Notes: generated by a model not told the origin, from the sequence alone. A DNA stretch of 40,113 nt from Pelomyxa schiedti (GCA_020536535.1 JAHLWZ010000394.1:1-40113), one strand, 5' to 3'. Positions 7,501 to 35,732 are shown, numbered from the stretch's first letter. Translations and numbers: made by a program.

Positions 7501-10500
7501 GAAAATAGTTACAAAGCGTAACTACCTTTTCTGTACAGACACCAACAGGGCCATAGCCATAAACGCAGACACAAACACCAGTCTCATAGTTACATGTGCC
7601 ACCAGGAAGTTTGCAGCTTTCATTGCAGGGTTCTTTCATTCAAGTAAATTGAAGTTTGTAGTGATGTGGGTCGTACTGTACGAAATACTGCAGTCATAGC
7701 CTTTCCATCCAACTATACAAGAGCAATTGCCAAATTCCTTGTTGCAGACACCATTGCCACTGCAGTCATTGGGACATGAAAAAAGTGCACAATCTGGTTG
7801 TAGTCTATTCGATGGGCAGTGGCATATACCTTGAGGAAAGTAAGATTAGGGATGTGTGGTTGTGAAATACCTGTTGTAATATCACAGCGTGCCCCAACTA
7901 CATTGCTGCAGTTGTTCGGGCAGTTCCAAATGAATGTGCTACACATTACGCCGGACCAGTAACCAGATGAGTTCTACTCGAGTTGAGAGTGTGTATTATA
8001 CGTGAATAAACGTACAGAATAACATTCACATTTGCCATCCACAGTATCGCAAAGACCATGGAGCGAACACTCACTGTCAGGATACCCAGGACACATCTGT
8101 CGGAAATGTCATTGCACTATAATGATATTGTCGGTTTACCAATAGACTGCAATCGCTCCCTTTTCTTCCAGTTTTGCAATAACAAACGCCCAGGTTGTGA
8201 TCACACAACCCGGAAGATGTTCCATTGCAGTTTCCAGGGCACTCAACATATTTCATGCTGCAGTCGTACATTTTCGTGTATGATGTATCACAGATGCACC
8301 AGCCTGTCGTTGGGTCACAGTGGCCATGCCCTGAGCAATTCCGTGCACATACAACCAAAGAACAGTCGTCCCCACCGTAGGTGATATTACCAATAGTCTT
8401 ACATATGCAAGTCTTTTGTTGTTTTTGAGTGAAAAATGCTTTGCGCGACGGAGCGCATACCCCTGTTGTCCAGTCGCAGCTACCAAAAGTAGAATTGGTA
8501 CAGTTATTTGGACAAGACTTCATAGGAATGCTACAAGAAGTTCCTATCCACCCAGGGTCGCATAGGCATGTGCCATTTACAGGGTTGCACTGACCATGGC
8601 CAGAACAATACTGGAAACAATGGTTAAGAATGCAGGGAAGTTAACGGGCTGCTACGGGTTCGTTATATGGCGGGCAAGCTTTCTTGGAGCAGTCTGCACC
8701 CCAGATCTTGGAATAGCAGTAACATACACCAGTGTTATAGTCGCAAGTTCCACTTGTTAAAGTCAGTGGCATTTATGAAAGGTACGAAGGTACTTGTGTG
8801 AGCAATTATTAGGGCAAGACAGCTTCTGAAACGTGCAAGCAGATCCCTCCCAGCCATCATCGCACTTACAGACTCCAGTAGTTGTATTGCACTTACCGTG
8901 CCCTGTGCAGTTGTTCGGACATTTTCTCAGAGAACAGTCCACGCCAAAGAATTGAGGTTGACATTTACACAGTCCCAGAATGTTGTCAACACAGAAACCA
9001 TTTGGTGAACTGCAGTTATTGGGGCATTGCTTGATGTACTTGAAGGCAACGTAGTTTGTGAGAGCCCAGCTTTCATTAAGCCACACAAGTTGAATCTTGA
9101 CCTATTTCGCACATTGGTACACATCTCTCAGTTTTGAAAACACACCGTTCCTGGATCATGTGGGGGGAGAGTGAAGGTGACAGTAGTGTCTGTCACGGTG
9201 AGAGGAGTAATAAGGTAGCCCAAGTCCGTCATGGAAACACGGATGCCAAATTTGCATCGTGCACCCATGAATCCACTTCCCTCCAGGGTAACAGTAGGAT
9301 AGACAGTTTCTTCAACGTGGAACTCCGTGGGTGAAATAGAGGAGAGAGATGCAAATTCTGTTTTCTGATGACTGGAAAGCGACGGGGTGGGGGTTCATAC
9401 CACAGGAAGCTCCAACAACTGAACGAGCTACATCCAGGGGACACCAGAATGTCAACCCATACAAGCGAACAGCGTAGGTAATATTCAAGTTTTGTAGAAA
9501 TTTCGGTAAGTAGCAACTCAAGTCATTGTAAGAGAAGTCCCTAATGTCAGATGAGAAATTCTGTAAAAACACTTGGGACTCACATTAAAGACATCCCGGT
9601 GTCATTTTTGTTGTCTCTATTTGGTATCGTTCCAAGAATGGAATTGTTTCGAATTTGTCTTGTGTTTGGTTAAAAGTAAAAAGGTTATTCAACGACTCAC
9701 ATAGAAAAAATACGACTATTCACAAGGGAGTATGGAAGATCGCCATCCAACTGATTGGACTGTACGTCACTACTCAAAATGAGTACGCAAACTGGATTCA
9801 GGAGACTTTACAGGGATTTGAGTGATCGCATGCTAGAAATTTCATCTGGAATGTGACCAGTTAACAAATTGAATCCAATGTCCCTATGGTAAAGTGAGAT
9901 GTTATGTTGGACTGCTCGCACTTACAAATACTCTAGAGTGGATGACTTGCTTAATGCTGAAGGGATGGACCCAGTCAAGTAATTGTGAGACATGTACCTA
10001 CCATTGTTAAGAGTGACAAATGGAGATAATGGAATACAATTTCTTAATCTTAGGGTAGTCGCCGATGGATGGGGGAACAGTACCAGAAAGCTTGTTCTCA
10101 TAGAGATACCTTTGGAATTTATTGGAAAAATATTGAAAAAAAAAAGTACTTACAGATGAGTCATATTCGGGAGGTATTGTAAATCAGGAGGAATTGTCCC
10201 AGAAATGTTGTTATCGTGGAGGAATCTAACTGGATGTCAGCAAAGAAGGTGATATCAAAACATGAAGGTAAGATACAAGTATTTCAGATGAGGAAGAGAG
10301 ACAGAAAACAGAAGTCCTTGATTTTCAGGGAATGATCCTGTGAGGTTGTTGTAGGCAAGATTTCTTTTGTAGATAAAGTTAGTAGCACTATGGGCCAAAG
10401 TATTTCCGCACATTATTGAGACTCGGTCATACATGTCACAAAAAATTCCATACCACTGTGGTAAGGCGTTCATGCATGGATTTTGGAAAGATGTCCAATT

Positions 10501-13014
10501 GGCATTAGTTTTCCAGAAGGGCCCTCCCATAGATTGATAGAGATTGAGTAATGCCCTCCCTACCGAGCATAAGCCAAAAACGTATTATCTTTATGCATAC
10601 ATTCTGAGGGAATAGCTGTCAATGTAACACCCCCTACTTGATCGACTGTGTAGTGTTTGCACTCGTCCCATGTCCAAAGGTCTAATAACGTTAGAGATAT
10701 CATGAAGCAGGTCGAACGCAACTAATCAAGTTTGCTGTGCCGGCTGGTCTCTCGGTATAGGATATTTGTGCTGCAGTTCTTAGTGTATTCCACACGCGAA
10801 TTTCGTAGATTACAGCATCTGGAATGTGCAGTGTGTCGATTTGAGGGTATGTGACAGTGGTTCCCGAAACTACACGGGTTGTTGTTAGTGTCGTTCCGAC
10901 TCATTTGGCGTACGTCTTTGCTTCTGCCCAATAGTGAGGAAGGAGGTCGAGAAAGTCAGACTTTTGTAGGAGTTTGATGTTGTTGACCAGACAGAAGTGC
11001 TGTTCACAAACATCTCAAGCTTTCCATTTGTTTTATCATAAGAAACCTAAATACTGTAAGAAATAGTGTCTGCATGATAGCAGTCGTACCCCGAGAACAA
11101 CAAGCTTGCCAGTTGGTAATACGTATCCTGTGGAGATTGGGGTTCCCTTAAGGTTTCTTTTTTGTTTTAGTTACTGTCCCACAGTCATTTCTCCTTACAT
11201 TCTGACAACATCGGATGCGTCAGTGTAGATCACAAATTCTCCTGTTGTCTCCCCGAATGCGAATAAGTATTTGACCTGAAATACAGAAGCATTAAGGCTT
11301 GCACAAAGAGTGGGAACCAAACCGCATATGGAAAAGACCAGTAACTAAACATCTCGATGGTAAATGATGAAGTAGGCAAAGTGTACGTTGCGTAAGCCAA
11401 AACATAGTCAATAGTCATATCCAAATAACAAGTACTCCAAGAAACAAGTGCTAAGATGTGGTTGACAACAGAAAAGAATTGGTTTCTTTAGAAGGATACG
11501 AGCTGGAGTCCGTGGATCCGAGGGCGCATCAGTCACTGTAACAACTAACTTGTCCAAGAAGATATGATGTTCCTTAAGCTCAAGGAAAATCCCAACATCT
11601 GAATTTGCAACCAGAAACACTGGGCACGAGTACTGCAACAATATTAAAACTTCAAGGGCTGGATAAAGAGATACCATATTCCACATGAAACGTCCCCCAG
11701 TATTGAGCTGCCATGAGACGGCATTATTATTATCAATCTATGAGTACATCAACATAAGAGAGTGAAGAATAATTAAGTGCCTTGAGGTAAATTTCATTTG
11801 AATCATTGTCAAATGCCATGGCACGCAACCAAAAACTGAATAGTCCTTGCATAGGAACTTGAAAGTGGTAGTTATTTTTCTTGTACTTGATGAGTGAAAT
11901 CAACACAGAAACTCCTTCATACAAAAGTGACTGTGGGTGGTGAAGACAGAAAAGGATTGGTCCCAGTCAAAATCGTATCCGCCTTTCCGCCACTTGCTGT
12001 AATCTCATCCCGAGTAACAAGTCCCTGGGACAGTGAGAACACAGAAGTATCTTCAAGTTCGAAAGTGCGAGTGGCAGGGGGCCGACCTACCTGGATGTTA
12101 GTAACACTCACAGAAAAGAATGGACATACAGCCCCAAGCAGGTAAATTCGATGCTGTCCCACCAACATAGTCGTCAGCAGGAACATAAGACCAGTCATTA
12201 GTGATCAAAAACTTATCTAAGTAACACAAGTCTGTGCTTTATGAAGTTTCAGTTACATGTTTTTCATGGATTTATTCTTACCCATAGTCAAAGCCAAATG
12301 TATAGTAGTCCGACGTGGCAACATTGAAGCCAAAACCTTCCTCCTTGTGCCATGTCCATCTAGCAACCCCAACAGGCGAAAATAGGGTGAAGTTGGTAAC
12401 CGTAAACTGAATACAATGAACATCCAAGGCTAAGAAGGGAAAAGAAAGCAACCGATGTGCGTTGTCCGTTTTGCAGACGTAACCAGAAAGCGGATGTGCC
12501 GTCAGCAAAAGCCCAAGTCCTGATCCAAACTGTGTAGTACCCAACTCTATGTGAAGCTAAAAACCCACAAGAAGTAATATTTAGGGTATGCATACGGGAG
12601 TGGAGTTGGGGTCCAGTAGTAATTGGTATTTTGCCCTACAACCTTGCTAATTTCATCAGGATTTACTTGACTCCATCCATTGAAGTTTGGAACAACGAGG
12701 ACCTGGTTTTTTTTTGTCACTATCCAGGCACCTATCTATTTAACACCAAACCTGTGATTTCAAGGGGGAAGTAGGTGCTTCTCCAATTGCACCAGCGCAA
12801 GACGCTCCATAAATTTGAAGGAGAACGTTCTTGGTAGCATTTATATTAGCGAATTCTGCATCCAGCCACATATACACAGGCGTGCATAGCGATACACCTG
12901 TTCCGTTTTTCGGTTGTTATTTGTTGTGGTTTTGATCACTTTTATTTTTTTTTGGTTTTTTTTTGTTGTAGGCGGTGACATACCTAAAAGGCCAAACAAA
13001 ACAACCAACATCAT
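4512..13014 (-). CDS. Large type I membrane protein: SP - 2x CBM/galactose-binding-like - pentraxin/LamG - LRR - IPT/TIG - ~30 EGF-like - TM (many exons)
   Basis: ATG at 13014 with signal peptide MMLVVLFGLLGVSLC. LamG motifs FLTIGQKQ and IYEIRVWNTLRTAAQI; LRR cap IPSEWRALLNLYQSMGGPFW..W.GI.C and NLAYNNLTGSFPE repeats; TIG motif TVTLEGSGFMGARCKFG..TVTDTTVTFTLP; many CPNNCSxHGxC..GxCxC..GW.G.DC repeats; TM YLLIGLVAAAGAVVLVGGSTCGFIVF; basic tail ending EKDSVPFGNAFAD*. The frame can be carried across the LamG-LRR junction with canonical introns; not every junction was checked. Confidence 0.85.
4790..9030 (-). repeat. Tandem EGF-like (tenascin-type) coding repeats, ~30 units
   Basis: Repeated six-Cys pattern C-P-x-x-C-S-x-H-G-x-C-x(4-5)-G-x-C-x-C-x(2)-G-[WYF]-x-G-x-x-C across exons; counted by eye. 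Confidence 0.9.
9440..10620 (-). other. Leucine-rich repeat region with plant-type N-cap
   Basis: LxxLxLxxNxL(S/T)GxIP units (NLAYNNLTGSFP, NNISGTIPP, NKLSGTVPP, HNYLTGSIPS, NLLTGHIPD, NQLDGDLP), with introns at a recurring position in the repeats. Confidence 0.85.
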
Positions 13015-13436: not shown

Positions 13437-16091
13437 CTAGGAGGAGGAGGGGGGAGGCCGCGGTGCTGCAGGTGAGGATGATGATGCTGCTGCTGTGGTG
13501 GTGGTGGTGGCGGATGCGGATGTGGGTGCGGTTGTGGATGCGGGTAGCAGGAGCGGGACAGGCTCGGGAGCAGGGGGAGGGGCGGCGGGGGACATTGCCT
13601 GGGGAGTGGTTGGTGACGGCGCATAGGGGTCAGAGGCCGGGACGGCGGCCAGCGGCACGTTGGTCTGGGTGTTGCCTACCGGCACGCCCTGAGACGCCAG
13701 CACCGGGCGTAGGGCCGCGAGAGCTTCCTTGGGGTCGCTGAACACAGCGGGGTCCTGTGTGTCTATGTTAGCGTGTTGTGTTGCTGAGGTGGATTGGAGA
13801 CTTACTGGTAGATTGGGCAAGGTGAGTTGCTTCAGGATAATGCGGGCGACGGCGGTGAGAGGAGAGTTGGCACTAGGCTCGGCGCCGCAACTGCTGCTGC
13901 TAGTTGTGGAAGTGGCACCCTGTGCTTCTGTTGGGGCAGCAGAAGCAGGTTTGGCGGTTTTAGACCTTACACAGGAGGTGGAAAGGAGCTTGGTATTTGA
14001 GTAGCAGTTTGGAGTGTAAGTGACTTCAAAGTTATCCATGTCTCCAATGAGGATCCTATTGTCTACTACCATTACCTGTGGAAAAAGTGAGGAGAAAAGG
14101 TTGTAGGGGTTTGTTTGCCTGTTCAGCGAATACATCATTGCAAGATATTTTTACAGGACCACTGGACTGCGAACTAGTTGAATAAGTATGTAGAAGGGAT
14201 TTATGCTAATTTACAAGATGAGAGTTAAGTTCCAAAGTGCGATCAACCAATCCAGTGGATCCTTTTTAATTTCGGCAACGACTTGAGGTTTGTCCTGCCA
14301 TAAAGAAAGAGGCACATGAGGAACGAACTTCATCACCAGGAAAGCGGCTTCACTTCCATGGAACTGGCAGTCCAAAATAAGTTTGTGTTGAACAAGGGTA
14401 GAAGGAGTTACCGTTGAGAGGAAGAACGTTTTCACGGGCATAAATAAACTGCTTACAGCACTGCGGGACACAATACGGAGTTTGGCGAATTCAGCTTGCA
14501 ACCTCTCTCTCTTAGTGTCAATTTTGACAAGCCAGTGAATGCATTCATTTGTTTTACTTTTTCCTTTTTTGGGCTTCGGGTATTCTGATACAATGAGGGA
14601 ACGTCGGCAATGCTTCGAGGCTAGAATCTGGGTGAAGTGTGAGGAGAGATTAGAAGTAAAGAATATATACAGTATCAAGAATTTTAGGCTCGATCTGAAG
14701 TGTTTCACTGTCAGCAAAACTGAATTTAGACCCCGGAGCGCCTAGAGCACCTCTAAGGTACGACATCCACACAGCGTCTTGTGGTAAGTCAAGGGACGAA
14801 GGAATAGGGGTGATCTTTTTCAAGAGTAAGTCAAACTTTTCGGGATAGAAGATTAATACATGTGGAATTTCTGGGAAAATCGGGTGACTCTTGAATGCTG
14901 TAAGTTGGGGTGCTATGACGGTAACTTTTTCCGCTTCTTCACTGCTGCATCTTGCCGCCGAGGAGTCATTTTCTGCCTCTTGATTTCTACCAACACCACT
15001 GCGCCGATGTACACGTTTTTCTTGAACTTGGATGTGAAACTTGCGGGAAGATTGAGGCAGTGAAACCCAGGAATCGGCTATGCTGACGAAATCCTGTATG
15101 AAGTGTGATTGTAATACAATGTGCATAAGAACCGTACAATGACTCGCATGTGTTCGGCAGCTGCCTCATTCCCAATAAAGAACATCAATTTATGGGAGTA
15201 TCTTGACAGTTCCGAATTCCGAGCTAAAACGAATACTTCATCACATATAGTGAATTCTAGTGCCCCATGTTCGTTAGGAGTTACTTCTAGTGTGGTAGTC
15301 GTGGGTGATGAGCCTTCGTCTTTGGGTTCTTTTAGTTAGAGTATTGGTTAATACCAGGCAGTAAGAGTATGTGAAAAAGGGGAAGGAAGACCTAGTTTCG
15401 AGGTTCTGTAGCTGACACACTTGTCACACAAGCAAGAAGCTTGGTCATGCCCTGTTCTTCTGCAGTGTGGTGCCTCCTTTTTCGCGGACCGAGGTAAATC
15501 TTCTCGAGGGGGTTCTGCATCACCATCCTCAGTCTTTTGCTTGCTCGTTGTAGCTACTTCACTACGGTTTTCTTCTCCTGAGGCATTTTCGGGTTGCTCC
15601 CCCGCGGACTGCTTAAGTGCTGTATTCTCGCCTTCTGCGCTGTCAACGTGAATCTGGGTGTCGTCACCGCTTTCGTCAGCTCTGTTTTGGCATTCCTCGC
15701 CACAGGCGCACGATTCTCCACAGAATTTATTAGCCCGCATGCACTTGCAGTGGAACTTCCCCTCGCAGTGCGTTGTTATGCAACCGCAAGTTATGGTTCG
15801 CCCCCTCTTCCTTGTGCTGGGAGTCGCGCTCGAACCGCGAGAGGTTACGCTTGACTCCCTCCTGCGAGGCGAGCGAGGCGAACGCGGGGGCGATTCCTGC
15901 GCGGGTAGCGATTTGTGGTGCACTTTCTCCTTCTTGGGGCTATCGGCGGGATCCCACTTGCGGTGTTGGGGCGTGTTGTAGCACGGGCTACAACTGCACT
16001 TGTCGTCGCAGTGCTTGGACGATCGCACGCATCGGCAGTGCATGGAAGTAGTACATCCAGATGACGCACATCCACAGTGTGTACCGCTCAT
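13437..16091 (-). CDS. Two CXC/CRC (tesmin/TSO1-like) zinc clusters + atypical kinase-like domain + Pro/Ser/Thr-rich tail (multi-exon)
   Basis: CGCASSGCTTSMHCRCVRSSKHCDDKCSCSPCYN and CGCITTHCEGKFHCKCMRANKFCGESCACGEECQN fit the CRC pattern. The downstream spliced region gives WLVK..AE (beta3-K/alphaC-E), FLVMKF (hinge) and ISCNDVFAEQVMVVDNRILIGDMDN. Stop TAG at 13437-13439. Confidence 0.75.
14076..14118 (-). other. Probable GC-AG intron (43 nt)
   Basis: CAG|gcaaac...tttttccacag|GTA. Splicing here restores the frame and gives D-x4-Q catalytic-loop spacing. An alternative GT donor lies 15 nt upstream. Confidence 0.55.
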
Positions 16092-16511: not shown

Positions 16512-19500
16512 TTAGTCCTTGTCCTTTGGATCCTCCCAGGCCTCGTTGTTCTCCCAGTCAGCGGCCTTGTTGGGCTCGTAGAGGACGTTGTCGATGACGG
16601 TGCCCTTGGTGTCATCAAGAAGCTGGTTCGGGATGTACCAGTTGGCACCTTTGGCCCATCTCTGTGTGGTGATCAATGTTTGTTATTGGCGGTTCGGTTG
16701 GCGGTTGTGATTGTGTGGTTATATATTATAATATAATAATAATAAGCTGTGGCTGTGTGCTGTTTGTTGGAGAGAGTGCGGGGAATTTATATGTGGGGGA
16801 ATGTACAGCGTAGCCAAAGAAGGCAGCTATTGCGGCTCCAACGGCTAGTAAAACGCCTCCTATTATGCTTCCGGTTGCTATCAGCGCGGTTTCAACGGGA
16901 GCAGGATCTGTGTATTGATTGATTTAGAGGGAGCGGCAAGTTTGGGATTCAGGAGAGATATATACTGCAAATTGATGCATCCGTTGCGTTTCCCATGCAC
17001 ATCCCGCATGCGTCTGCTGTAGCTCCGGACCATGTAAGCCCGTCACAGCCGTAGCTTTTGGAATCGTAAGTATCCAGTAGAATCCGGGAATTTGTTAAAC
17101 ATACCAATCGCTCTGCCCGTTACACTGCCCACACTCATCATAAATAGCCCCACTGAATGCAACACCGTCGCAACCGGCGCAGCTGGTACCGTTGCCTCCG
17201 CATATTCCGCAGGCATCCACGACCTGAACTGCGTGTGAGAACCAGCTGGAATGATTTTTGCACCTTACCAGTCCGGACCAAGCAACGTTGTCACAGCCGA
17301 AGCAATCAGTGGTGCCAATCATTAGACCACAAGCATCATAGTATATGCATTCGTTGTTTCCACCACAAACTCCGCAATCGTCTACCGTCTGTGGAGGATT
17401 CCATTAGATTTGGGTCTGACTCGAACTGTGGGGCACTCACTCTGTTGGAAAATGGTACAAAATCACAACCCAGACTAAAGAAAAATTAGTGTTGGCAGAT
17501 TAAAAGAAAAGGGAGAACCATCCACTGTCTCCTCCACAGACACCACACTAAAACATGTTATTTACACTTGACAAAAATAGAGAAGCCACCTTATCGTAGG
17601 TCAGGCCAGAGAAAGTTTTGCCATCACAACCAATGCAATCGTCCTGACCACCACAGACGCCACAATGGTCGTAGGTCTGAAACGTGTGAAAAATAACATT
17701 TCCCATCATTCTGCATACCACAACAGACCACGCAATGGAGTCACAACCAAGACAAGAGTTGTCTCCTCCACATTCTCCACACTAACACTGTCGTGAGATT
17801 TAAGTTGTCTTGAAGGGGCAATTTACATTGTCGTATTGTTTTACGGGTTCATCTATGTAAACTGCGTCATCACAACCCACACAGTCGTTGTAACCTCCAC
17901 ATACGCCACATCGATCTTCATACACGTTGTTCTAGCCAGTGTGAGAGGAAGAATTAGTGAAAGAGTGGTGTACTGTGTTCCATGGAGTCCCATCACAAGC
18001 AAGGCAAGAAGGCTCTTCAGCACATTCGCCACATTCATTGTATGTCAGTGTGCCCCATGGTATCCCGTCGCAGCTCAGGCAACTTGAGTTATCACCGCCA
18101 CAAACGAAGCAGGCATCAAAAACTGCGGTGGAGTATGGAATTCCATCACACACACCGAGGCATTTATCGGGAATGGAATCGCAGTCCCCACACTGAAACG
18201 CAGTTGGGATAATGGTCAAAGATGATGAATACTTCTTACCAAGTCATAAGTCTTACCGCTGAAAGCAACACCTGCAGTGTGTAACTACGTTGGGCAAAGA
18301 AAGTAAAGAGGCTTACTGTCACAGCCGTAGCATTCGTTTGAGCCTCCACAAATACCGCAATCGTCATAATCGAGAACGGACCAGTACTTTCCGTCGCACC
18401 CCTTACATTCAGAATATCCACCACCTAGAAAGTTATTAGTGCTGTATGCGTGATTACCATGTATCGTACAGATTCCACAGGCATCGTAAGTGAGCCCGCT
18501 CCATAATTTACCGTCACACCCAGTGCAAGTGTGGTTGTCACCGCCGCAGATACCGCAGCCATCCCAATCAAGTCCTGAAAATGGCTAAAATGCTGAGTAC
18601 TCCTTGAAAACGACATAGGAAATACTTACGACATCGTCGCATCCTACACACACTGCAAGGGTAACTTAGTATTGAAGGAATTTGTTTACTGTAAGACTTA
18701 CAATCGGGAATTGTGCCATTGTTGCAGATACCACATCGATCGTAGGTGGCCGAACCATAAGGTTCTCCAAGACAATCAAGGCAGGTGTTATTTCCTGAAG
18801 AGATTAGAGCCGATTCCCCGTTTCATAAAGGAAAGAACCTCCACATTCCCCACATAGATCAGGAGGTGGACCCCACAGAACTCCACACTCTAAAAACGAT
18901 GTTACTGGGTGAGGTAAGAGAACCTCAGGGTACCCAAACAGTCCACTGTTTCAGCCCCACAATTTCCACAGATATCATACTGATAACCGTACGGTAAGCC
19001 ATCACAGCCAATACACACTACGGGAGCGTTAATAGAATATCTAGAGTTGGAATCATACAGTCTGTGCCATTGCAAATTCCGCATTTGTCAACAATCCACG
19101 GAGACCATTGTACACCAAAGCAGTCAAAACAATCAACAGACTCCGCTATGGTAGTGAGACATTTGGAATGATCTGGGGATGAAGATACCCCCGCAATTGC
19201 CACAAACGTCGTACGTCAAGCCTGAGTCCTTTACACCATCGCAACCGTAGCACTAAAGGAACCCATTTAGATGACAATTAAACTTGACGGGGTAAAAACT
19301 TGATTAGGTGGATAAACAAAACATTCTCCACAAAGATCAGGATCGTTCCCAGACCAAGGTAATCTGTCGCATTTTCCAAGGCAACCATCATCACCTTTGC
19401 TTATGTTACGTGGCATTCTATCCAAAGAATAGGGGGATACCTCCACACTCCCCGCAAGCATCATAATACTTCTCTGACCACATTACTCCGTCACATCCAA

Positions 19501-22305
19501 CACAAGTGTCGTTGGCTCCCCCGCAGAGTCCACAAAGATCATACTGCATACTCATATCGAAAGAACCTGGGTGAATATTAAATGCACTGGAAGTATAAAC
19601 CACTCATTCAGAAGGATACCGTCACATCCTCTACAGCTGCTTCCGTCCCCACCGCAAACGTTGCATACATCATATTCTATGTTATGTAACTTACAGAGAT
19701 AGAGAAAGAGAAAATACATACGAAGAGGGGGGAATGCTGTCTTGTTATCACATCCCACGCACCAGGCTGGCCCATTACAGACTCCACAGACTACAACCGC
19801 AGTTCCCCATGCTTCTAGGAAGCAGTCGTAGCAATCGTCACTCCCACCGCATACTCCACAGGTGTCGTACTAAAACGTCGTTAGTGTGCTACTAGCAGTT
19901 TGAAGTCGAACATTTTTCAAAGGTAACTCGAAGCTGCCGTCACATCCCATACAAGAAGAGTTGTCTCCACCACAAATGCCGCACAGATCCAGTTTGTAAG
20001 GTCCATAAGGTTTGTGTGTACAATCCATGCAAGTGTTATTTCCACCACACACTCCACACAGATCGTAGGTGGTGGGATTCAGGGAAGGCACTCCATCGCA
20101 ACTAGGGACATTTTAGTGAGGTGTCTCCATTCCTAGCACATACCCTGTGCAAGTTGCATTGTCGTAATATGAGTCGGTGTCACACACCCCACAGAAGTCT
20201 TCATATGCATAATCATCACCAGTTATGACTTGACCTGCGCAGTCCAAACACGTGCTACTGTTCCCGTCACAGACACCACATTCGTCATAGATCCTTTTGA
20301 ACAAGTTAGAAAAAGTCACACACTTCTGAGAAGTACAGGAATCCATATGGTGTTCCGGCACAGTCAACACAAGCATTTGTACCGCCACATTTTCCACATA
20401 GGTCATTAACCTTGGGTCCATTTGGAACCCCAGTGCAGTCTAAAATTTATGAGTTTATGAAAAAACAAAAAAAAAGGCAACCTAAGCATGGATAATGGTT
20501 AGTTACATTGATGTTGGACTTGCCCCATCCCAGAACTACCAGCTGAATATAACAGTTTTGAGGATTTCTGGTAAAAAAATGAGAAATCAAGAACAAAGGA
20601 CACTGCAGGCATACGGTACGGATGTAAGATTGACGTAGAACAAATAAGTCTTCTGTTCCGTCAAGTTTGTGTACAGGTGGGGCTTTGTGTCCTCAACATA
20701 AGAAAGCGGATCGTCGATAATAAATATCTGTGAGCTATAAGATATTTACAAGTTGAAGGCGGTTAAATACCTCGGCTCGAGATGTGATATAAGCCAGAGC
20801 ATATTTTACGGACTCCACAAGGTTACCACTATCAGCAGACAGAATTACAATTAAACCAAACCTGAAATTCCTCAGAAAATAAGTTAACTGAAAGAAACCA
20901 TACCCCCAGGAGGCTTGGAGAGCTTTCCACTGCAGGGTTTCATCTACGCTGTTAGAAGTAGGCTCATTGTTTACAAGAAACACAGGGAAAATGTTTCTTC
21001 GTAAAAACAGCGGTGCTAACAAATCCGGGTCTGGGTAATTCTCACCATCACCAGGAAGGTGCCTTTCAGTTGTTAATCGCTAAAATAATCCTTCTGGTGC
21101 ACACCCAATGCCGCTCCAGTCACAAGGTGGAGTAACACAGTCTGGTGTACAGTCGTAATTGTTTGCAGGAAGCGATGTTGCAGTGTTATCTTCATATTCT
21201 GAGGAGGTGGCCATTATGAGTACCTAGAGACAAGTAAGAAGAATAAAATACAGTTCAGGACAACTTTGATGGCTTCTTCTCTCCATTGTGTGGCTGGGCA
21301 TGATGAAAAAAGCATTCCTTCTAGTGCATCATTGGCGTTGCTTTTTGCAGTGAGGTATACATCTAAATTCTACAGAGGTAAGCCACAGTAGGTGTGGAAG
21401 AATACAACCAACAGCTGAGCTTGAAGGCCAGTGAAGTCCTTCTGAAGAACTTGAAATAGCTTATATGGCCAATTAGCACCATCAACTCTGGTTAGTTTTA
21501 ACCAGTTTTAAGACAAAAAAAGAGGATTCAAACCTGTTGTCTCCAACAGGCTTTTCTATGAAAGAACTCAAACCAAAAGCGCTGTTCTTACGTAGTGCAA
21601 TGACTTCTGCAATCATTTCCACCAACTTCATGGCAAATGTTGAGAGGTCATCGCCCATGAAATACGATTGATCCTAAATAGTGTGAACTCCAATGTGGAG
21701 TAAACTACATACATAAGTGAACATTAAATCGAGGGCTTGGTCATCCTGGCTTGGAACCAGAAGTTCAATCGGAACATCAAGCGGGTCGTTGGGATGTAAA
21801 TATACGTAGGAGACCTGTGCGGTGTCAAAGTGGGAAAACAAAAGGAAGAAATAATCACTCACAAATGGGTGAACAGGAAAGCCCGAATCTACCCAATATA
21901 CCTGGCTGTGAAGGTGGTGCCACTTGTAGGGGCACGTTCCAACCAACGGTCCTTCAATACTCAGAAATAATATTTTGACGACGCACAGAACGTACCGTCC
22001 CTGTTGCCTTTCGTGCAATACGCGCCAGCAGGATCAGCGCACCAACCACAAGTCGCATCTCCACCGTTTGAATACACACAGGCACTACAATTCTTTCCGT
22101 CACATGCAGCTGTAATAAGTTAAAATGAAATAAATTCACAATAAAAAGAAAACTAACCTTCCACAAGGCCACGTGGAGCTAACCCTATCACTATACAAAA
22201 AAAAAGTTAAATCAAAAGTTCGGTATTAATAATAATGGAAAAAACAAACCAACCTTGCAACAAAACAAGTGTAGTCGTTACAAATAACGCTGTAAAGTGT
22301 ATCAT
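16512..22305 (-). CDS. Integrin beta-like protein (PSI + beta-I/vWA, Cys-rich repeat stalk, TM, NxxY tail; many exons)
   Basis: Signal peptide MIHFTALFVTTTLVLLQ; PSI CSACV..CGWC..C. Beta-I motifs LDLMFTYDQSYFMGDDL, FGLSSFIEKP, QWREEAIKVVL, LPANNYDC, NYPDPDLL..NIFPVFLV and LSADSGNLVESV are colinear with integrin beta (VDLYYLMDLSYSMKDDL, LGFGSFVDK, GWRN..RLLV, PNDG.C, DYPS..NIQPIFAV, LSEDSSNVV). TM with GSIIG; tail ..IDNVLYE..NNEAWE..; TAA at 16512-16514. Confidence 0.88.
16965..20440 (-). repeat. ~30 tandem Cys-rich coding repeats, consensus YDxCG[VI]CGGxxxxCxGCDG.P
   Basis: Examples: YDLCGVCGGNNTCMDC, LDLCGICGGDNSSCMGCDG, FDACFVCGGDNSSCLSCDG, VDACGICGGNGTSCAGCDG. Count is approximate. Confidence 0.9.
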
Positions 22306-22597: not shown

Positions 22598-24685
22598 TTA
22601 CAGCTGCAGGAGGATTGGGAAAGTATCACCAAGCCAATTGCGGATGCTTGAGGGCCTCTTCCATGGCCTCTGCTGTGACCAGTACTCTGCAATGTCACGT
22701 GTTGTGATGTCAGGGAACACCCTCATCGTGAACTGGGCCATCACTGGTGTGTGTGTAACAAGGCACATCCAGTGTTGTTTCACAGTCTCTGATGTGATAC
22801 CTGGGAACACCCTCAGCATCATCTGAAACGTGAACAGGTCAGATGCTGAGAATGCTGATGGATCCCAGTGCAATTCCAACACCTGTGTAATTAAGAGAAT
22901 CTTCTTTGAAAAGGGAAATTCTCACACCTCATCCAAGGTGATGTGAAACCTGTTGATGAGCCACTCTGCACAACTGGCCTGTCTCCGTGCCACTAGATTG
23001 TGAAGCAACGTGTTGTTGTCGAGTGTGATATGCTCACGTTCTAGTTGGAAGTGTGTGATCAACCACTTCACTGACTTGATGGATCCAAAGCTAATCAACT
23101 CAGGGTTTGCAAGGCACTGTGCAACGGACTCTTTTGTGAATTCACCCATGGAAATCACCTTTTTGACTTGTGTGAGAGTGTCACCTTGCAGGCTTTCCTT
23201 CAGTACACCAAGGAGGAGCTCAGTGTGTGTTGGTTCGCTGATGGGGAACTTCTCAATGATGAAAAGTGGCGTTGCTGACAATCTTTTTTTACCCAGAAGG
23301 TACTTCACAGTTTCCGCAACCAAACTTTCATCCAGGTTTGCCATTGTTGGGTGATTCAGAAGCCATTTCACGCCTTGTGCCCTTTCGTCACCAGATTGGA
23401 TGTGCTTGCACATCTTGGAAAGGACTGAACTTACTCCAGTTGTTGTATTTTTCATGATGCCGAAGGACTCATCCAACCACGATGCAGTGGCGATGTTGTT
23501 GGTTGCCAGTGAAATGACAAAAGACTCGCAGGCATCCTCTGGTGAAAGACTCACCTTTGTTGACAGCCACTTCATCACATCCAAATTTTCCGTTTGGTTT
23601 TTGCAGGCTGCACGAAATATTTCAGGTGTTGGTGTGACTGAGTGCTCCTCAACGGCCCACTTCAGAAGATCAAGTCCACCTTCTTTGGGGCAAACTCTCT
23701 TAACCATTTCACTGGTGACGGTGAATGATGAAGGAAATGAAGAAGCTGCCCACCTGAGTACCTCAGCATTTGGAAGCGCATCAATGAAACTGTCATCAAT
23801 GGGAAGAATGCGATCCCTGATGCACTCACACACAGCAGTGCAATTGGTCCTGAGGAAATAGAAAGCTGTTGTTCCCTTGAAGGGTGAATCTGCACCCACA
23901 GGGAACATTTCCAATGCCCACTTGACAGTTTCCACGTTTCCACCCCTGCAAGCCTCTCCCTGAATGAACTCAGCCCTCCCAGAATAGTACTTTTTCAGGC
24001 TCTGTGGGCCAATTGATCCCACAATCCACTTTGCGACTTCCAGCCTCCCCTTGGAAAGTGCGGATATCATTGGCCCGTACAACTCCCAAGGGTGGTCCAT
24101 GTACCCAAACCTCTCGACCATCCACTTCACCACATCCAAGTGTCCCTTCTTGCACACTCCAGCGAGCAGATCTGAGTTCCTCACGTGGTCATCCAGCAGG
24201 AAGCGATCGCAACTCCAAATTGTGGGATCTGGCCACACACCAGCGACCAGCTTCTGTGCCATTTCCAAGTGACCACCGCAGCACAGCCCCTCAAGGATGT
24301 GCACCAACTCCTTGGTCTTGTTCCCGTTGTTGCCCGCGTTGAGCTCATTCTCTGTTGCCGCCGATGTATCGGAACTATGGGTTTCGTTGGATACGTGGTG
24401 CTTGATGAGCCACCTGAGGCACGATTGGGCACAGGCCTCGGCGGCCACTTCGAGGGCGAGGTAGTACTTGCTGTCGTGGTTCAAGATCAACCGGCACGCT
24501 CGAGGGACGAGGGGGAAAACGCCCTCGCAGACACTTAACAGCGTGACGGCGTCGTCAGTCGTTCTTATGGGTGCCAGAAGCGTGGCGCCGTTGGTTGGTG
24601 TGTCCAACCACGGGAGTACGTTGTCCCACAACAGCCTCGACAACCAAACGACTCGGTTGTGGTACTCAGCACGCGCAGTAGACAT
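22598..24685 (-). CDS. Ankyrin-like helical-repeat family protein, copy A (intron 22883-22927)
   Basis: Long ORF with GLCCGGHLEMAQ, VCKKGHLDVVKWM, ALSKGRLEVAKW and ACRGGNVETVKW repeats. Conserved intron after HITLDE; last exon DLFTFQMMLRVFP.. Confidence 0.85.
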
Positions 24686-24726
24686 CAATAGATTGGATTT
24701 TGCTTGTTTTTCAAATTTTCAACCAG

Positions 24727-26825
24727 TTACCAGAGGCTTCTGGGGCGCCACCCATAAGCCCTAGCTACCCACGGGTCCCTTTGTGCCCAGAAAGCAGCAA
24801 TCTCAGGTGTCGTGATGTCAGGGAAAACCCTCATCGTGAACTGGGCCACGACTGGTGTCCGGGTCGCAAGGCACATCCAGTGCTGTTTCACAGTCCCTGA
24901 CGTGATACCTGGGAACACCCTCAGCATCATCTGAAACGTGAACAGGTCGATTTTTGAGAATTCTGATGACTCCCAATCCAATTCCAACACCTGTCCACAA
25001 AGTGTGAGGAAGATGTATCCTTGGGAAAGGGAAATTCACACACCTCATCCAAGGTGATGTGGAACCTGTTGATGAGCCACTCTGCACAACTTGCTTGTTT
25101 ATTTGTCAGGAGGTTGTGAAGCAACGTGTTGTTGTCAAGTGTGATGTGCTCACGTTCGAGTTGGAAGTGTGTGATCAACCACTTCACTGCCCTCGTTGGT
25201 GCAGACATAATGAATGCTGAGTTTGCAAGGCACTGTGCAACAGCCTCTTTTGTGAATTCACCCATGGAACTCACCTTTTTGACTTGTGTGAAAGTGCCAC
25301 TGAGAAAACTTTCCTTCAGAATTCCAACAAGGAGCTCAGTGCGTGTTGGTTCACTGATGAGGGGGAACTTTTGAATGATTAAGAGTGGTGTTGCTGACAA
25401 ATTGAGGAACAGAAGGTGCCTCACAGCTTTCACAATCAGGCTCTCTTCCACCTGAGTCATCTCTGGATGATTCAGGAGCCATTTTACACCCTCTATTCTT
25501 TCCTGTTTAAATGGGATGTGTTTGCACACCCTCTCAAGGATTGAGGTTGCTCCGTGGTGAAAAGGAGTAGCATGTTTCATGATGCCGAAGGACTCATCCA
25601 ACCAAGACGCAGTGGCGACGTTGTTGCTTGCCAGTGAAACGGCGAAACACTCACAGGCATCCTCTGGTGAAAGACTCACATTTGTTGATAGCCACTTCAT
25701 CATCTCTAAATTCTCCTTTTGGTTTTTGCAGGCTGCACTAAACAGTTGGGGCGTTGGTGTGACTAAGTTTTCCTCAACGGCCCACTTCAGAAGATCGAGC
25801 CCACCTTCCTTTGGGCAAACCTTCTGAACGGTTTCACTGGTGATCATGGCGGAGAAGGGAGAATATACAGAACTTGCCCACCTCAGTACCTCTGCGTTTG
25901 AGAGGGAGTCAATGTGAAAGGGCTCAAATGGAAGTTGCGTGTGCTCTTTGATGCACTCGCACACAGCGGTGCAATTTTTCCTGATGTAACCATAAAACGA
26001 GCCTGCAGTGTACAGACTGTCCAAAGGGAACAGGCCAAGCACCCACTTCACAGCTTCCACGTTTCCACTCTTGCATGCTTTTCCCTGAACGACCTCACTG
26101 TAACACGTTGTCATGCTCTGCGGGTCGGCAATTGATCCCACAATCCACTTTGCGACTTCCAGCCTCCCCTTGGAAAGTGCGGCCGCCACTGGGCCATACA
26201 GCTCCAAAGGGTGGTGAGTGTACCCAAACCTCTCGACCATCCACTTCACCACATCCAAGTGACCCCTCTTGCACACTCCAGAAAGTATATCCGCCATCCT
26301 CACGTGCTCAACAATGTACGCCTCCCCACTGCCATTGGCACCACAACCACCCCCCCACGTGATCCCACTCGGCCAGATACCACCACCACCGCGATAAGCC
26401 TCCGTAAGCCTTGTTGCGGCGTCCAGGTGGCCAGCACGGCACAGGCCCCCAAGGACGCGAATAAACTCCTTGGTCTCGTTCCTCCGGTTCCCTGCTTGGT
26501 CATTGGCGTGGTTCGTGATGAGCCAATTGAGGCACGACTGGGCCCCGGCCTCGGCCGCCGCCTCGAGTGCGTTGTAGTACTTGTTGTCGTGCGACAGCAC
26601 CAGGCGACACATGCGGGGCACGAGAGGGAAGATGCCCTCGCCGACACTCAGCAGCGTCGCACTTTCCTCACTTGTAATTGTGGGATCATCATCACCATCG
26701 CCGTTGTTGGTTGGGGACACGACAAGCCACGGGACAACGTTGTCCCACAATAACCTCGACAACCACACAACTCGGTTGTGGTGCTCCGATGCTCCCCTCG
26801 TCGTGTTGTTGTCTCGTATCATCAT
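24727..26825 (-). CDS. Ankyrin-like helical-repeat family protein, copy B (intron 24991-25043)
   Basis: Paralogue of A with the same motifs and intron position. Start inferred at MMIRDN by homology. Confidence 0.85.
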
Positions 26826-27039
26826 CAAATGTAGACGCAGAAAGTGATGTTGATGATTGTGATGTTTCAGTGAAAAGAAATCAAAGCACAACCGATCCAC
26901 ACAACACGCGATACTCACCACAACACACGAGATTCAACACCTCACGGCACTTTGGAAACCCACAAAGTGGCGAAACTCATTGAACTCGCCGAGTTCAATG
27001 AATTACCCCAAAAATGAGCCCTGGACTCGTTTTTTTTAT

Positions 27040-29261
27040 CTATTGTCTAATACTATTAATCCAAAGCTGGACACTGAGGGGAACTTCACCTTCCGGCTCA
27101 TGGGACCAGCGCTCGGCAATGTCAGTGGTTGTGATGCCAGGGAACATCTGCATTGTGAACTGTGCCATCGCTGGTGTGCTTGTGACAAGCTTCAGAAAGT
27201 GCTCTTTGACTATTGCTGCTGTGATACTTGGGAACACCCTCAGCATCATCTGCCATGTGAACATATCAAATTCAAGTGGCATCCCGTCTAACTGGAACCC
27301 AATCACCTGTGACACACACACGAAGGTGAGTTAAATGGTGAAGAAGGATAATTATCATCAACCTCATCCAAGGTGATGTGGAACCTGTTGATGACCCACT
27401 CAGCACAACTTGCATGGTCATTGACCAGTAAATTCTTCAGTATTGCAATGTTGTTGAGTGTGATGCACTTGCGTTCCAACTGGAATTGAGTGATCAACCA
27501 CTTCACTGATTTGCTTGAGAACAAATAAGGGCAATCGGGGATTGCAAGGCACTGTGCAACAGCCTCTTTCGTGAATTCACACATGGAAATCACCTTCTTG
27601 ACTTGTGTGAGATCACCACCTTGAACACTTTCCTTCAACACACCAATGAGGAGCTCAGTGCGAGTTGGTTCACTGATGATGGGGAACTTCTCAATGATGA
27701 GGAGTGGTGTTGCTGACAAATTCTTTTTGAACACAAGGTGTCTCACAGCTTTCACAATCGTGGTTTCATCAATGCTGACCAGCATTGGATGATTCAGAAT
27801 CCATGCCACACCCTCCAACCTTTCCCCAAAAAACATTTTCTTGCAGACATTCATGAGGATTGACACAGCTCCACATTTTTCCACAATGTGGAAGGTGTCA
27901 TCCAGCCATGATGCAACTGCTGTGTTGCTGCGTTCCAAAGAACTGACCAAGGAATCTTGGAGAATTTCGCCAGAAGGTGCAACTTTGGACGCCAACCATT
28001 GCACAAGCTGCACGTCATCTTCGGAGTTTCTGCAGGCTGCACAGAACGCTGACAAATTTGGGTGGATTTCCTTCTCTTCAACCACCCACTTGGCCATCTC
28101 ATGGGCACTTGAGGCCACTTCACACAGGTGCTCAAGATTTTCCTTGGAGAGTGTGAATTCTGGAAACGCTGATGTGGCCCACTTGAGTACATCCAAGCTG
28201 CCAATTTTCCCGAAGAATTCTTCTTCAGAGGAAGTGGGCCAATCAGAGGGTGCAGGACTGTGATCCTTGACGAACTGGCAAACTTCCACAGTTTCTCCTT
28301 TTCTCTCACTGTCCCCAATGCATGGGATCAGCTTGAAACACGTAGTATCACGTCCCAGTGGAAAATTCTCAAAGCACCACTTCACAACACCCAAGTTTCC
28401 ACTTTGGCATGCTTCGTAGTCCACCAAACCCTCATGCCTAATGAGCAAAGGGATCACGTGCACAGACTGGCTGGCTGCCCACTTGGCCAACTCCAAGTGT
28501 CCCCCTCTGACAGCACCAACGAGTGCCCAGATGAGCTCCCAAGGCTCGTCCCTGATGTCGAACCTCTCCACCAGCCACCTCGCAACGCCCATGTGCCCCT
28601 TGTCACACACTCTCTCCAGGAGGTTGGATGACTTCACATGATAAGCAAGGTCCCAATCAACTCCCCTCCTCTCCACCCTTGTCCCTGGGTCTGATTCACC
28701 CCCACCACTGCCACTACTCCTCCCACTGTACCAGAAACCAGGGGTTCTTCTCTCGGGGTCAGACCTCTCCTGTTTCCGCCACGTTATTCCAGGCAAAATG
28801 CCACCACCATGATGATAATCCACCAGTGCTTGTGCCATCTCCGAATGACCACCACAGCACAGCCCATCCAGGACACACATCAACTCCCTTTTCTCTTTCA
28901 CTTCCTCAGTGCTGAAATTGCTCCTTTCAGTGTTGTTGTTGCTATTGTGGGATTTGAGGAGCCAACAGAGGCAGGAGCTGGCGCCGGCCTCTGCGGCTGC
29001 ACCGAGGGCGGTGTAGTACTTATGGGTCCGCGATAGGATGAGGCGACACACGCGGGGCACGAGGGGGAATACGCCCTCGCCGACCCTCGCCAGTGTCACG
29101 CAGTGCTCCCTCGTCAGATCTGGTGGGGGCGTCGACCACGATCGTCGCGACGACGGCAACAACCACTGGACAACGTTGTCCCACACGATCCGCGACACCA
29201 ACAGAACCCGATCGTTGTGTTCCTCCCTCGTTCTTTGACGACCACCCGTGTCCCCCATCAT
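27040..29261 (-). CDS. Ankyrin-like helical-repeat family protein, copy C (intron 27307-27362)
   Basis: Paralogue with SRIVWDNVVQWL, GEGVFPLVPRVCRL and CDKGHMGVARWL; same intron position. Confidence 0.85.
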
Positions 29262-29376
29262 TTCACAGAAAAAAAAGGATAATGATTATCCCTTCGGCGG
29301 AACGCCTGTCTGACAGGATCGTTTTTTTTCTGATCGATCGTTCCGTTAATCAAAATAAATAAACACCTCCTTCATT

Positions 29377-31497
29377 TTATGACAGCTTATGGAGGATTGG
29401 GAAGGCGTCACCAAGCCAATTGCGGATGCTTGAGGGCCTCTTCCACAGCTTCTGTTTTGACCAGTAATCAGCAACGTCACGTGTTGTGATGTCAGGGAAC
29501 ACCCTCATCGTGAACTGGGCCATCACTGGTGTGTGTGTAAAAAGGCACATCCAGTGCTGTTTCACGGTTTCTGCAGTGATACCTGGGAACACCCTCAGCA
29601 TCATCTGCCATGTGAACAGGTCTGAGTCAATGAAGGGAGATGGCTCCCAGGTTAGCAGCAGCACCTGGTCACAAAGAAAGCGGCTTAAAAATGTCTTTTT
29701 GGGAAGGGAAAATCACACCTCATCCAAGGTGATGTGGAATCTGTTGATGACCCACTCTGCACAACTGGCCTTTCTATGTGTAAGGAGGTTTTGAAGCAAC
29801 GTGTTGTTGTTGAGTGTGATGTGCTCACGTTCGAGTTGGAAGTGTGTGCTCAACCACTTTAATGCCTTCATTGACCCAAACACATTCAACTCAGGGTTTG
29901 CAAGGCACTGGGCAACAGACTCTTTTGTGAATTCACACATGGAAATCACCTTCTTGACTTGTGTGATGGTGTCATTTTGAACACTTTCCTGCAGTACACC
30001 AATGAGCACCTCGGTGCGAGTTGGTTCACTGATGAGGGGGAACTTCTCAATGATGAGGAGTGGTGTTGCTGACAAATTCTTTTTGAACACGAGGTGCCTC
30101 ACAGCTTTCACAATCAGGCTCTCTTCCACCTTTGACATCCCTGGATGATTCAGGATCCATTTTACACCCTCTATTCTTCTTTCCTGTGTGATGTGTTTGC
30201 ACACCCTCACAAAGACTGAACCTACTCCAAATGGAGTGGTTGTGGCACGTTTCATGATGCCGAATGACTCATCCAACCAAGACGCAGTGGTGATGTTGTT
30301 GATGGACAGTGAAATGGCGAAACACTCACAGGCATCCTCTGGTGAAAGACTCACCTTTGTTGACAGCCACTTCATCACCTCCAAATTTTCGGTTCGGTTT
30401 TTGCAGGCTGCACGAAACAGTTTTGGTGTTGGTGTGACTGAGTGGTCCTCAACGGCCCACTTCAGAAGATCAAGCCCACCTTCTTTGGGGCAAACGATCT
30501 GAATGATTTCACTGGTGATCTTGAATGAAGGAAATGCAGAAGTTGTCCATCTGAGCACCTCTGCATTTGGGATGTCACCAGGATTAAATGGAAGCGGAAG
30601 GTGCTCTTTGATGCACTCGCACACAGCAGTGCAATTTTCTCTGAGGAAATTAAAAAAGATGCCTCCAGTGATTGTATAGTCCAAAGGGAACATGTGAAGC
30701 ACCCACTTTATGGCTTCCACGTTTCCACTCCGACATGCCAAGCCATGAATGATCCGAGGTCTTCCAGAGAAGTACTTTTTCACACTCTGTGGATCACTTA
30801 TTTCACCCATAATCCACTTGGCTACTTCCAGCCTCCCCTTGGAAAGAGCTGCAGTCAGTGGCCCATACAGCTCCCAATGATGGCCAGTGTACCCAAACCT
30901 CTCAACCATCCACTTTGCCACATCCAAGTGACCCCTGCTGCACACCTCAGAAATTGTATTCTCCATCTTCACGTGCTCAGAAATGTATGCCTCCTCCCCT
31001 TCACCACAACCGCCCCCCCACGTGATCCCACTGCTTGGCCAGCGACCGTGACCACCACGATAAACATCCACGAGCCTTGTTGCGGCGTCCAGGTGGCCAG
31101 CGCGGCACAGGCCCCCAAGGACGCGAATAAACTCCTTGGTCTCGTTCCTCCGGTTCCCTGCTTGGTCATTGACCTCGTCGTCGTAGTTGTTGTTGTTGGT
31201 GTGGTTCGTGATGAGCCAATTGAGGCACGACTGGGCCCCGGCCTCGGCTGCCGCCTCGAGTGCGTTGTAGTACTTGTTGTCGTGCGACAGCACCAGGCGA
31301 CACACGCGGGGAACGAGAGAGAAGATGCCCTCGCCGACACTCATCAGCGTCACACTGTCCTCACTTGTAATTGTGGGATCATCATCACCATCGCCGTTGT
31401 TGGTTGGGGACACGACAAGCCACGGGACCACGTTGTCCCACAATAGCCTCGACAACCACACAACTCGGTTGTGATACTCGGTACGCACCGTCGACAT
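29377..31497 (-). CDS. Ankyrin-like helical-repeat family protein, copy D (intron 29665-29718)
   Basis: Paralogue. Start MSTVRTEYHNRV inferred from homology with copy A (MSTARAEYHNRV). Confidence 0.85.
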
Positions 31498-35710: not shown

Positions 35711-35732
35711 TGTTATCTGTTAAAAAAGCACA

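Follow-up and report, generated by a model that had tools for sequence, protein, structure and literature searches.

Integrin betas found outside animals serve to reconstruct the origin of cell-matrix adhesion. Kang et al. (bioRxiv 10.1101/2020.04.29.069435) report them from 19 amoebozoan taxa, including Mastigamoeba balamuthi, and regard as an "authentic" non-metazoan integrin beta a membrane protein whose vWA head and three cation sites are accompanied by a cysteine-rich region; published surveys take the three cation sites together with a cytoplasmic NPxY motif as the mark of authenticity. Among the amoebozoan proteins the adhesion site dependent on metal ions (MIDAS) and the synergistic metal-binding site (SyMBS) are well conserved, the site adjacent to the MIDAS (ADMIDAS) is variable, NPxY is found in most members and a GxxxG motif in some, and the stalk pattern DXCGXCGGX(3-6)CXGC occurs in 3-7 copies (bioRxiv 10.1101/2020.04.29.069435). 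Here we describe a Pelomyxa schiedti gene that shares the architecture of this group and departs from it in several of these diagnostic sites. It occupies positions 16512-22305 on the minus strand of a 40,113-nucleotide stretch (GCA_020536535.1 JAHLWZ010000394.1:1-40113), referred to below as the window, and all coordinates are counted from the first nucleotide of the window.

Our preferred reading, to which we give a probability of roughly 0.75, is that the gene encodes a type-I membrane protein of amoebozoan integrin-beta descent, the fifth paralogue of its genome and the one with the least conserved motifs, which is still a working receptor altered in its cation and tail sites. An intact gene can be followed from an ATG at 22305 to a TAA at 16512-16514 through 40 exons and 39 GT-AG introns, and the coding sequence of 3924 nt, which makes up 68% of the gene, translates into 1307 aa. 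This exon model agrees codon by codon, with 0 mismatches, with the public P. schiedti protein KAH3763297.1 (1307 aa), whose public name, "exocyst complex subunit 4", is clearly wrong. From the N-terminus, a signal peptide, a PSI domain and a hybrid/beta-I head lead into a stalk of 30-31 DxCGxCGG...CxGCDG modules, after which come a transmembrane helix with GxxxG and a tail of 49 residues. The protein thus resembles the amoebozoan type I integrin betas in its signal peptide, PSI domain, integrin-type vWA head, DXCGXCGGX(3-6)CXGC stalk, transmembrane helix (with GxxxG in some members) and short tail, and the Archamoebae members in particular in a membrane-proximal GANW[YF]IPN. It differs from the group of Kang et al. 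in having other residues at three of the five MIDAS positions and in the SyMBS, NVLY in place of NPxY, and 30-31 stalk motifs against 3-7.

An earlier first-pass annotation, made from the DNA alone, had called the gene a highly spliced non-animal integrin-beta homologue with PSI and beta-I domains, a GxxxG helix and some 30 CGxCGG modules in place of the I-EGF units and the beta-tail domain. That description of the architecture holds throughout, as set out below. Two implications of it do not: amoebozoan integrin betas with this stalk motif had already been published in 2020-21, among them those of Kang et al., which include the closely related Mastigamoeba, and canonical function is put in doubt by the loss of most SyMBS residues and of three of the five in the MIDAS, and by the degraded NVLY and NEAW motifs. 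The family and its stalk motif being known, what is new here is a copy that has lost the MIDAS and SyMBS ligands and NPxY.

Descent from the amoebozoan (type I) integrin-beta family is well supported by sequence comparison and by the predicted fold. The gene is one of five integrin-beta paralogues in P. schiedti. In six-frame searches of the genome (52.4 Mb, 5337 scaffolds), the MIDAS exon of the paralogue on contig C693 and the tail exon of the present gene, used separately, returned one and the same set of loci, namely contigs C693, C906, C910 and C351 and the window itself, with E-values of 5e-5 to 3e-3, so that chance likeness does not account for them. Matches of the tail exon to the tails of the four other genes (C910, C693, C906 and C351) had E 5e-5 to 2e-4, and of all loci matched by the C693 MIDAS exon the window scored lowest. 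The head is colinear, exon for exon, with the genes on C693, C906 and C910 at 28-60% identity, and shares their intron positions. All four paralogues have in common with the present gene the head exon layout, the stalk module, the intron between the transmembrane helix and the tail, the GANWYIPN motif and a neighbouring gene of one family, described below. They also keep the residues that this copy has lost (D-x-[ST]-x-S, D-x-P-E, T-D and NP[IV]Y). By sequence, the present gene is the least canonical integrin beta of the genome.

The profile score reflects this. KAH3763297.1 reaches 16.9 bits against PF00362 (Integrin_beta; E 0.0055, residues 121-173), below the cut-off of 24.8 bits, compared with 76 and 82 bits for the two paralogues that have public proteins (KAH3759353.1 on C693 and KAH3744682.1 on C906) and 52 bits for a Mastigamoeba balamuthi relative. 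Integrin_beta is the only Pfam family that the protein matches at E <=0.1, and generic VWA families (PF00092, PF13519) are not matched at E 0.1. Of the Pfam profiles proposed in the first-pass annotation, Integrin_beta was matched under its threshold and PSI weakly; the outcome that would have spoken against the homology, a domain scoring solely as a generic vWA, did not occur. These full-length searches, like the folding, used the database record KAH3763297.1. Earlier searches had used single exons: ten such pieces gave no Integrin_beta match in Pfam, just PSI (E 0.22) and ADAMTS_CR_3 (E 0.005); phmmer searches of the PDB with single exons returned integrin beta-6 at E 0.45 only, and nothing with a second piece. 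PF00362 searched against the genome in six frames likewise found the four other loci and missed this one. With the full-length protein, all 16 of 16 PDB sequence matches are integrin betas (beta-6, beta-3 and beta-1) aligned at the right positions, the best at E 0.0056.

For residues 1-476, an AlphaFold model based on an alignment of 66 sequences reached a mean predicted local distance difference test score (pLDDT) of 83.3 and a predicted template modelling score of 0.81. Its top 50 Foldseek matches are without exception integrin-beta chains, at E 4.6e-25 to 6e-22 over 389-469 aligned columns. The alignments to this model take in the PSI, hybrid and beta-I headpiece in full or for the greater part, so that the predicted head has the integrin topology of PSI plus a hybrid domain into which beta-I is inserted. 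It superposes on the animal headpieces of beta-1 (4wk4_B), beta-3 (4o02_B) and beta-6 (4um9) with Foldseek E of about 1e-24 to 1e-25, and the animal motif DLxxxxD-x-S...DDL...FGSF[VI][DE]KP can be recognised in the P. schiedti head. Unlike animal integrin betas, with which it shares about 16% identity, the protein has a shorter specificity loop, lacks I-EGF units, the beta-tail domain and HDRxE, and is missing MIDAS and SyMBS ligands.

In two maximum-likelihood trees of the head, KAH3763297.1 falls inside the amoebozoan-type group with CGxCGG stalks (Shimodaira-Hasegawa-like approximate likelihood ratio test support of 98 in the first tree, split support of 98/97 in the second). Within that group it belongs to an Archamoebae subgroup with Pelomyxa and Mastigamoeba proteins that pass PF00362 (support 93 and 80/88, respectively), and the best tree contains a Pelomyxa-only clade with weak support (67/68). 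The C910 and C351 paralogues, which have no database protein, and about half of the bacterial RTX-type matches were left out, and the trees contain no animal or other obazoan integrins, none being among the 150 matches listed. Of the phylogeny suggested in the first-pass annotation, the amoebozoan half bears the homology out, placing the gene inside the amoebozoan integrin-beta clade. Paralogue colinearity, Pfam and PDB matches, fold and tree agree on integrin-beta descent, even though single exons are too short and too divergent to reveal it.

Loss of the cation motifs on an integrin-like scaffold is also a feature of the Dictyostelium surface adhesion proteins SibA-E, whose vWA head is like that of integrin beta but lacks the three cation motifs, and which also have a GxxxG helix and an NPxY-type tail that in Sib binds talin. 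The combination of lost cation motifs, a vWA head, an N-x-x-Y tail and a helix with GxxxG is found here as in Sib (Kang et al.) and would be expected of a Sib-like or generic vWA adhesin whose likeness to integrin beta arose by convergence. We hold such convergence to be very improbable, given that neither PF24909 (vWA_SIBA-E) nor PF00092 is matched at E 0.1 (the paralogues have secondary PF24909 matches), that the PSI, hybrid and beta-I topology follows integrin headpieces over the 389-469 columns aligned, and that exon structure, stalk module and tail motif are common to bona fide paralogues; the PSI/hybrid head and the cysteine-rich stalk are moreover absent in Sib. By analogy, the Sib proteins remain a possible functional counterpart of this copy.

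In canonical integrins the MIDAS holds a Mg2+ ion that binds an acidic residue of the ligand. Of the head domains, PSI and beta-I were located as the first-pass annotation had proposed, colinear with integrin beta. In order, the head comprises a PSI-like cysteine-rich domain with a CGWC motif (residues 30-83, 21902..22107), assigned from the weak Pfam match on its exon, paralogue colinearity and Foldseek coverage; the N-terminal part of the hybrid domain (residues 84-122, 21737..21901), with the segment QVYWVDSGFPVHPF kept in paralogues; the beta-I, or integrin-type vWA, domain on seven exons (residues 123-360, 20774..21736), supported by PF00362, PDB matches and the AlphaFold/Foldseek comparison; and the C-terminal part of the hybrid domain (residues 361-428, 20438..20773), ending in LGWG...PC, which is also kept in paralogues. 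The hydrophobic pattern that defines the fold of the head is preserved.

The MIDAS and SyMBS within this head are degraded. We compared them with the 66 sequences of the head alignment, which are the relatives meant in all counts that follow. The MIDAS motif, DxSxS in the family, reads D131-Q-S133-Y-F135 (21659..21673), and the position of F135 is Ser in 64/66 sequences. In the SyMBS/MIDAS loop S213-N-A-N216 (21331..21342), the position of N216 is a Glu that serves as common ligand of MIDAS and SyMBS in 62/66, and that of S213 is the SyMBS Asp in 64/66. The fifth MIDAS residue, Asp in 64/66, corresponds to S245 (21203..21205) at the end of the strand VLIMAT, where TDA has become TSS. KAH3763297.1 thus keeps two of the five MIDAS residues, all five of which are kept in 62/66 sequences. 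Relatives read G/N-x-D-x-P-E where the SyMBS loop here reads A211-K-S213-N-A215-N216, with E170 conservatively kept; the SyMBS pattern by the criteria of Kang et al. is D/E ... N-D-x-P-x-E. The ADMIDAS, S-x-x-D-D, retains its pair D138 D139 (21647-21652), and its Ser, shared with the MIDAS, is F135. The alignment of N216 is anchored by an L-E-G-M helix just after it, and S245 stands at the end of the predicted strand 237-244. In the four paralogues the corresponding motifs are D-[SI]-[ST]-x-S, D-x-P-E or W-E-E, and T-D.

As three of the five MIDAS positions are occupied by Phe, Asn and Ser, canonical Mg2+-clamped ligand binding is unlikely, and from the aligned residues and the predicted fold the protein is probably a non-canonical receptor that works independently of cations. 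The tail bears on the same question. A transmembrane helix, ALIATGSIIGGVLLAVGAAIAAFFGY, is encoded at 16810..16887 with its GxxxG realised as GSIIG (16858-16872), and the tail of 49 residues follows at 16515..16661, as established by the tail-exon search and alignments; a single-pass GxxxG helix with a short tail is what an integrin beta should have. The membrane-proximal GANWYIPN (16626-16649) is common to the paralogues and Mastigamoeba. The first-pass annotation had pointed to NVLY followed by NNEAW as counterparts of the talin and kindlin sites, and both are present, NVLY at exactly the position given: NVLY (16578-16589) aligns with NPIY/NPVY of the paralogues and NEAW (16536-16547, within N-NEAW at 16536-16550) with their NQLY/NPNF. 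Neither the NPxY/F motif nor the distal NxxY/F is intact, the N and Y of the first motif being kept, and the two are best read from the alignment as degraded forms of the NPxY/NxxY that the paralogues retain. A Mastigamoeba balamuthi protein (EP00727 P004613) keeps all MIDAS residues and carries SGMY and NAGF in place of NPxY, so the Pelomyxa copy is not alone in having lost the proline of this motif.

Against this stands the view that the protein is a canonical integrin beta, with a cation at the MIDAS, an alpha-chain partner and activation by talin and kindlin through NVLY and NNEAW. It would account for the integrin-beta architecture and fold, for the retention of D131, S133 and the DD pair, for an N-x-x-Y at the NPxY position, and for the I/LWEQ (talin/Sla2-type) domains that occur at no fewer than three loci of the genome. 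F135, N216 and S245, which replace residues kept in 62-64 of the 66 relatives, argue the other way, as do the replaced SyMBS and the loss of the NPxY proline and of the tyrosine of the distal motif, both kept in paralogues. Nor did a convincing integrin alpha emerge: Integrin_A_Ig_1 had no six-frame match in the genome, although short exons make its absence unprovable, and the best FG-GAP match, at 25 bits, was to an open reading frame (ORF) with a single FG-GAP-like repeat. Talin_middle and Vinculin had no six-frame match either, in a search in which the controls were also silent, so that absence is not shown. On balance we judge canonical function unlikely.

The stalk, a very long disulfide-rich leg, departs from animal integrins and from other amoebozoan members in different ways. 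It spans residues 429-1224 (16967..20437) and, by module list and alignment, consists of 30-31 tandem modules of about 25-26 residues, with the consensus [YF]DxCGxCGGx(2-4)CxGCDGxxxSGxx and four invariant cysteines per module (122 Cys in 798 stalk residues); these modules carry the amoebozoan pattern DXCGXCGGX(3-6)CXGC. Long stalks are also found in the Mastigamoeba balamuthi integrin betas EP00727 P004613 and P013107 (1302 and 1199 aa). A four-module AlphaFold model is extended, with a pLDDT of 87.8, and a Foldseek search with it gave no significant PDB match and none to EGF domains. A stalk without PDB or EGF match indicates that the I-EGF leg has been replaced and has not merely diverged, which agrees with the replacement proposed at first reading. 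The nearest likeness is to the ADAMTS Cys-rich domain (ADAMTS_CR_3; ADAMTS13 structures 3ghm and 6qig), with which the module shares the knuckle D-x-CG-x-CGG-D-N-S-x-C. The local superposition on the end of the ADAMTS13 domain extends over 21-23 residues at a root-mean-square deviation of 0.6-0.8 Angstrom and 33-45% identity; it is not significant (E 2.6-8.0) and fits the weak ADAMTS_CR_3 matches in Pfam. ADAMTS proteases carry the motif a single time, closing a larger domain, whereas the stalk repeats it some 30 times as a module that stands by itself.

A copy that has lost its diagnostic residues might also be a redundant one on its way to becoming a pseudogene, under relaxed selection and weakly expressed or silent. 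It is exactly the family-defining residues that are lost, the Pfam score is under the cut-off, the gene pairing is head-to-head at the other four loci and disrupted at this one (see below), and the sequencing runs that cover the gene are all DNA and none RNA. Yet all 40 exons are open, all 39 introns are GT-AG, and all stalk cysteines are kept along with the hydrophobic fold pattern. The branch from the Archamoebae node to KAH3763297.1 has a length of 1.29, against 1.12-1.47 for the others; since it is no longer than those of the paralogues, the motif losses look targeted and do not resemble general decay. For the same reason we rejected general fast evolution as the cause of the low Pfam score, which is explained by the lost residues carrying most of the information in the PF00362 profile.

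Variation within the sampled DNA also speaks against decay. Four public runs match the 5901 nt searched around the gene, all of DNA and from one sample, and their contigs are colinear with it without joints. They differ from it at 8 positions, of which 6 are intronic, 1 lies in the 3' flank and 1 is an exonic synonymous change (AGT->AGC); the three indels within the gene (1-2 nt) all fall in predicted introns. Given 68% coding sequence, we calculate the chance of finding at most one of the seven in-gene differences in exons as about 0.006. The pattern favours the exon model and also points to purifying selection, albeit with a small number of sites and a single sample. The codons of the metal-site and tail-motif residues discussed above show no variant in the four runs. 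Taken with the intact reading frames, these differences, which spare the coding sequence, make progression to a pseudogene quite unlikely in our estimation.

Several points weigh against the reading of an altered but working integrin-beta descendant. The PF00362 score of 16.9 bits does fall short of the 24.8 required by Pfam; the link to animal and obazoan integrin betas rests on Pfam, PDB and fold matches, as the tree held none of these sequences; the evidence for lost metal binding is residue alignment and fold prediction; and D217 beside N216, together with E170 and the kept DD pair, could on the sequence allow some cation binding. Every run covering the gene is DNA and none RNA, the splice junctions rest on the sequence, the public model and conserved intron positions, and the polymorphism argument draws on 8 sites in runs of one sample.

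If the altered-receptor reading is correct, the protein would still act at the cell surface, as its intact gene and the avoidance of coding changes among variants suggest. A head with F135, N216 and S245 would be unlikely to clamp an acidic ligand residue through a MIDAS Mg2+, and might instead bind a ligand or partner without a cation, or the protein might serve as a modulatory subunit. Its tail would probably dock FERM/PTB-type adaptors through the membrane-proximal motif and N-x-x-Y, with changed affinity or choice of partner: as GANWYIPN and N-x-x-Y are both kept, some docking of this type is plausible with altered specificity. The locus then offers a natural experiment, an integrin-beta scaffold without a MIDAS for which four canonical paralogues in the same cell are the controls. 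It also illustrates how such copies escape surveys based on profiles and names, since this one carries a wrong name and no precomputed Pfam domain and scores below the cut-off.

The surroundings of the gene hint at a possible partner. Downstream of it, on the same strand and past one intervening gene, lies a giant surface-protein gene (about 4515-13000, minus strand) with LRRNT (E 0.002) and IPT/TIG (E 9e-5) domains and at least 17 teneurin/tenascin-type EGF modules, which we call the LRR-TIG-EGF gene. The gene between the two (14020-16091, minus strand) has CXC/tesmin-like cysteine clusters, with an ORF at 15348-16091. The genome holds six matches to the LRRNT exon, and the five integrin-beta contigs account for five of them. 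At C693, C906, C910 and C351 the matching sequence is on the strand opposite to the beta gene, a few kb away from where that gene starts, in head-to-head orientation; in the window the LRR-TIG-EGF and beta genes stand in tandem with one gene between them. A tenascin ORF has been reported beside the Mastigamoeba integrin-beta gene (Kang et al., bioRxiv 10.1101/2020.04.29.069435). The linkage suggests a common job, and the presence of an LRR-TIG-EGF giant gene beside all five beta genes gives a testable clue to the partner chain that is missing. One could go further and picture an Archamoebae receptor unit made of integrin beta and an LRR-TIG-EGF protein in place of an alpha/beta pair, with the present copy as a cation-independent or regulatory form, intermediate toward Sib-type adhesins within the integrin-beta clade; we offer this as a speculative and rather unlikely extension.

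The structure of the gene leaves a few further details to record for the coding region as a whole (16512..22305, minus strand, defined by the exon model and the codon check against KAH3763297.1). The model was obtained with a dynamic-programming splice finder, adjusted with paralogue conservation and the spacing of stalk modules, and then checked against the public protein; its junctions are based on the sequence, the public model and conserved intron positions. Public P. schiedti genes were predicted by Augustus and improved by PASA/EVM with transcriptome data (PMC8887013). Even before splicing, the stop-free pieces in the three minus-strand frames display a signal peptide, CGWC, DxSxxMxDDL...FGxSSFIEKP, about 30 CGxCGG units, a hydrophobic helix and a short tail. 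Thirty-eight introns measure 39-63 nt (median 45). Exon 1 (22254..22305) holds the start codon and the hydrophobic signal peptide MIHFTALFVTTTLVLLQ, and the paralogues begin alike. The public model includes a 33-nt micro-exon at 22158..22190, to which the alternative is a single 144-nt intron leading from the signal peptide straight to the first PSI cysteine, as in the paralogues.

The last intron (16662..16806) is CA-rich, 145 nt long and the sole one above 63 nt, and separates the transmembrane exon from the tail exon. An intron lies at the same boundary in C906 and C693, and this conservation together with the public model supports splicing of the NVLY exon to the transmembrane exon, the junction that the first-pass annotation had made a test of its reading. 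Were this intron retained, translation would stop 26 residues past the membrane helix and the conserved tail would be absent. At 16477, in the GT-rich sequence that flanks the gene on its 3' side, a 14-nt insertion, TGGTGTGTTGGTGT, is present in one DNA run and looks like length variation of a simple repeat.

Some observations concern the public records and the rest of the window. The three P. schiedti integrin-beta paralogues with database entries, KAH3763297.1, KAH3744682.1 and KAH3759353.1, are all named "exocyst complex subunit 4", and the record for C693 (2194 aa) continues past the tail stop into a 3'5'-cyclic nucleotide phosphodiesterase gene, with which it is fused. A word search with residues 60-430 returned only the protein itself among 5.8 billion. 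Among the 150 matches listed for the MIDAS-exon profile, most are RTX-repeat (HemolysinCabind) proteins, as opposed to amoebozoan-type integrin betas; they have a strong Integrin_beta domain, scoring 231-247 bits in the two scanned with Pfam, above the amoebal proteins' own scores. Beyond the start of the gene, within 22598-40113, the minus strand carries long intron-poor ORFs of 558-668 aa (e.g. 22922-24688, 24927-26921, 27303-29261 and 29713-31719).

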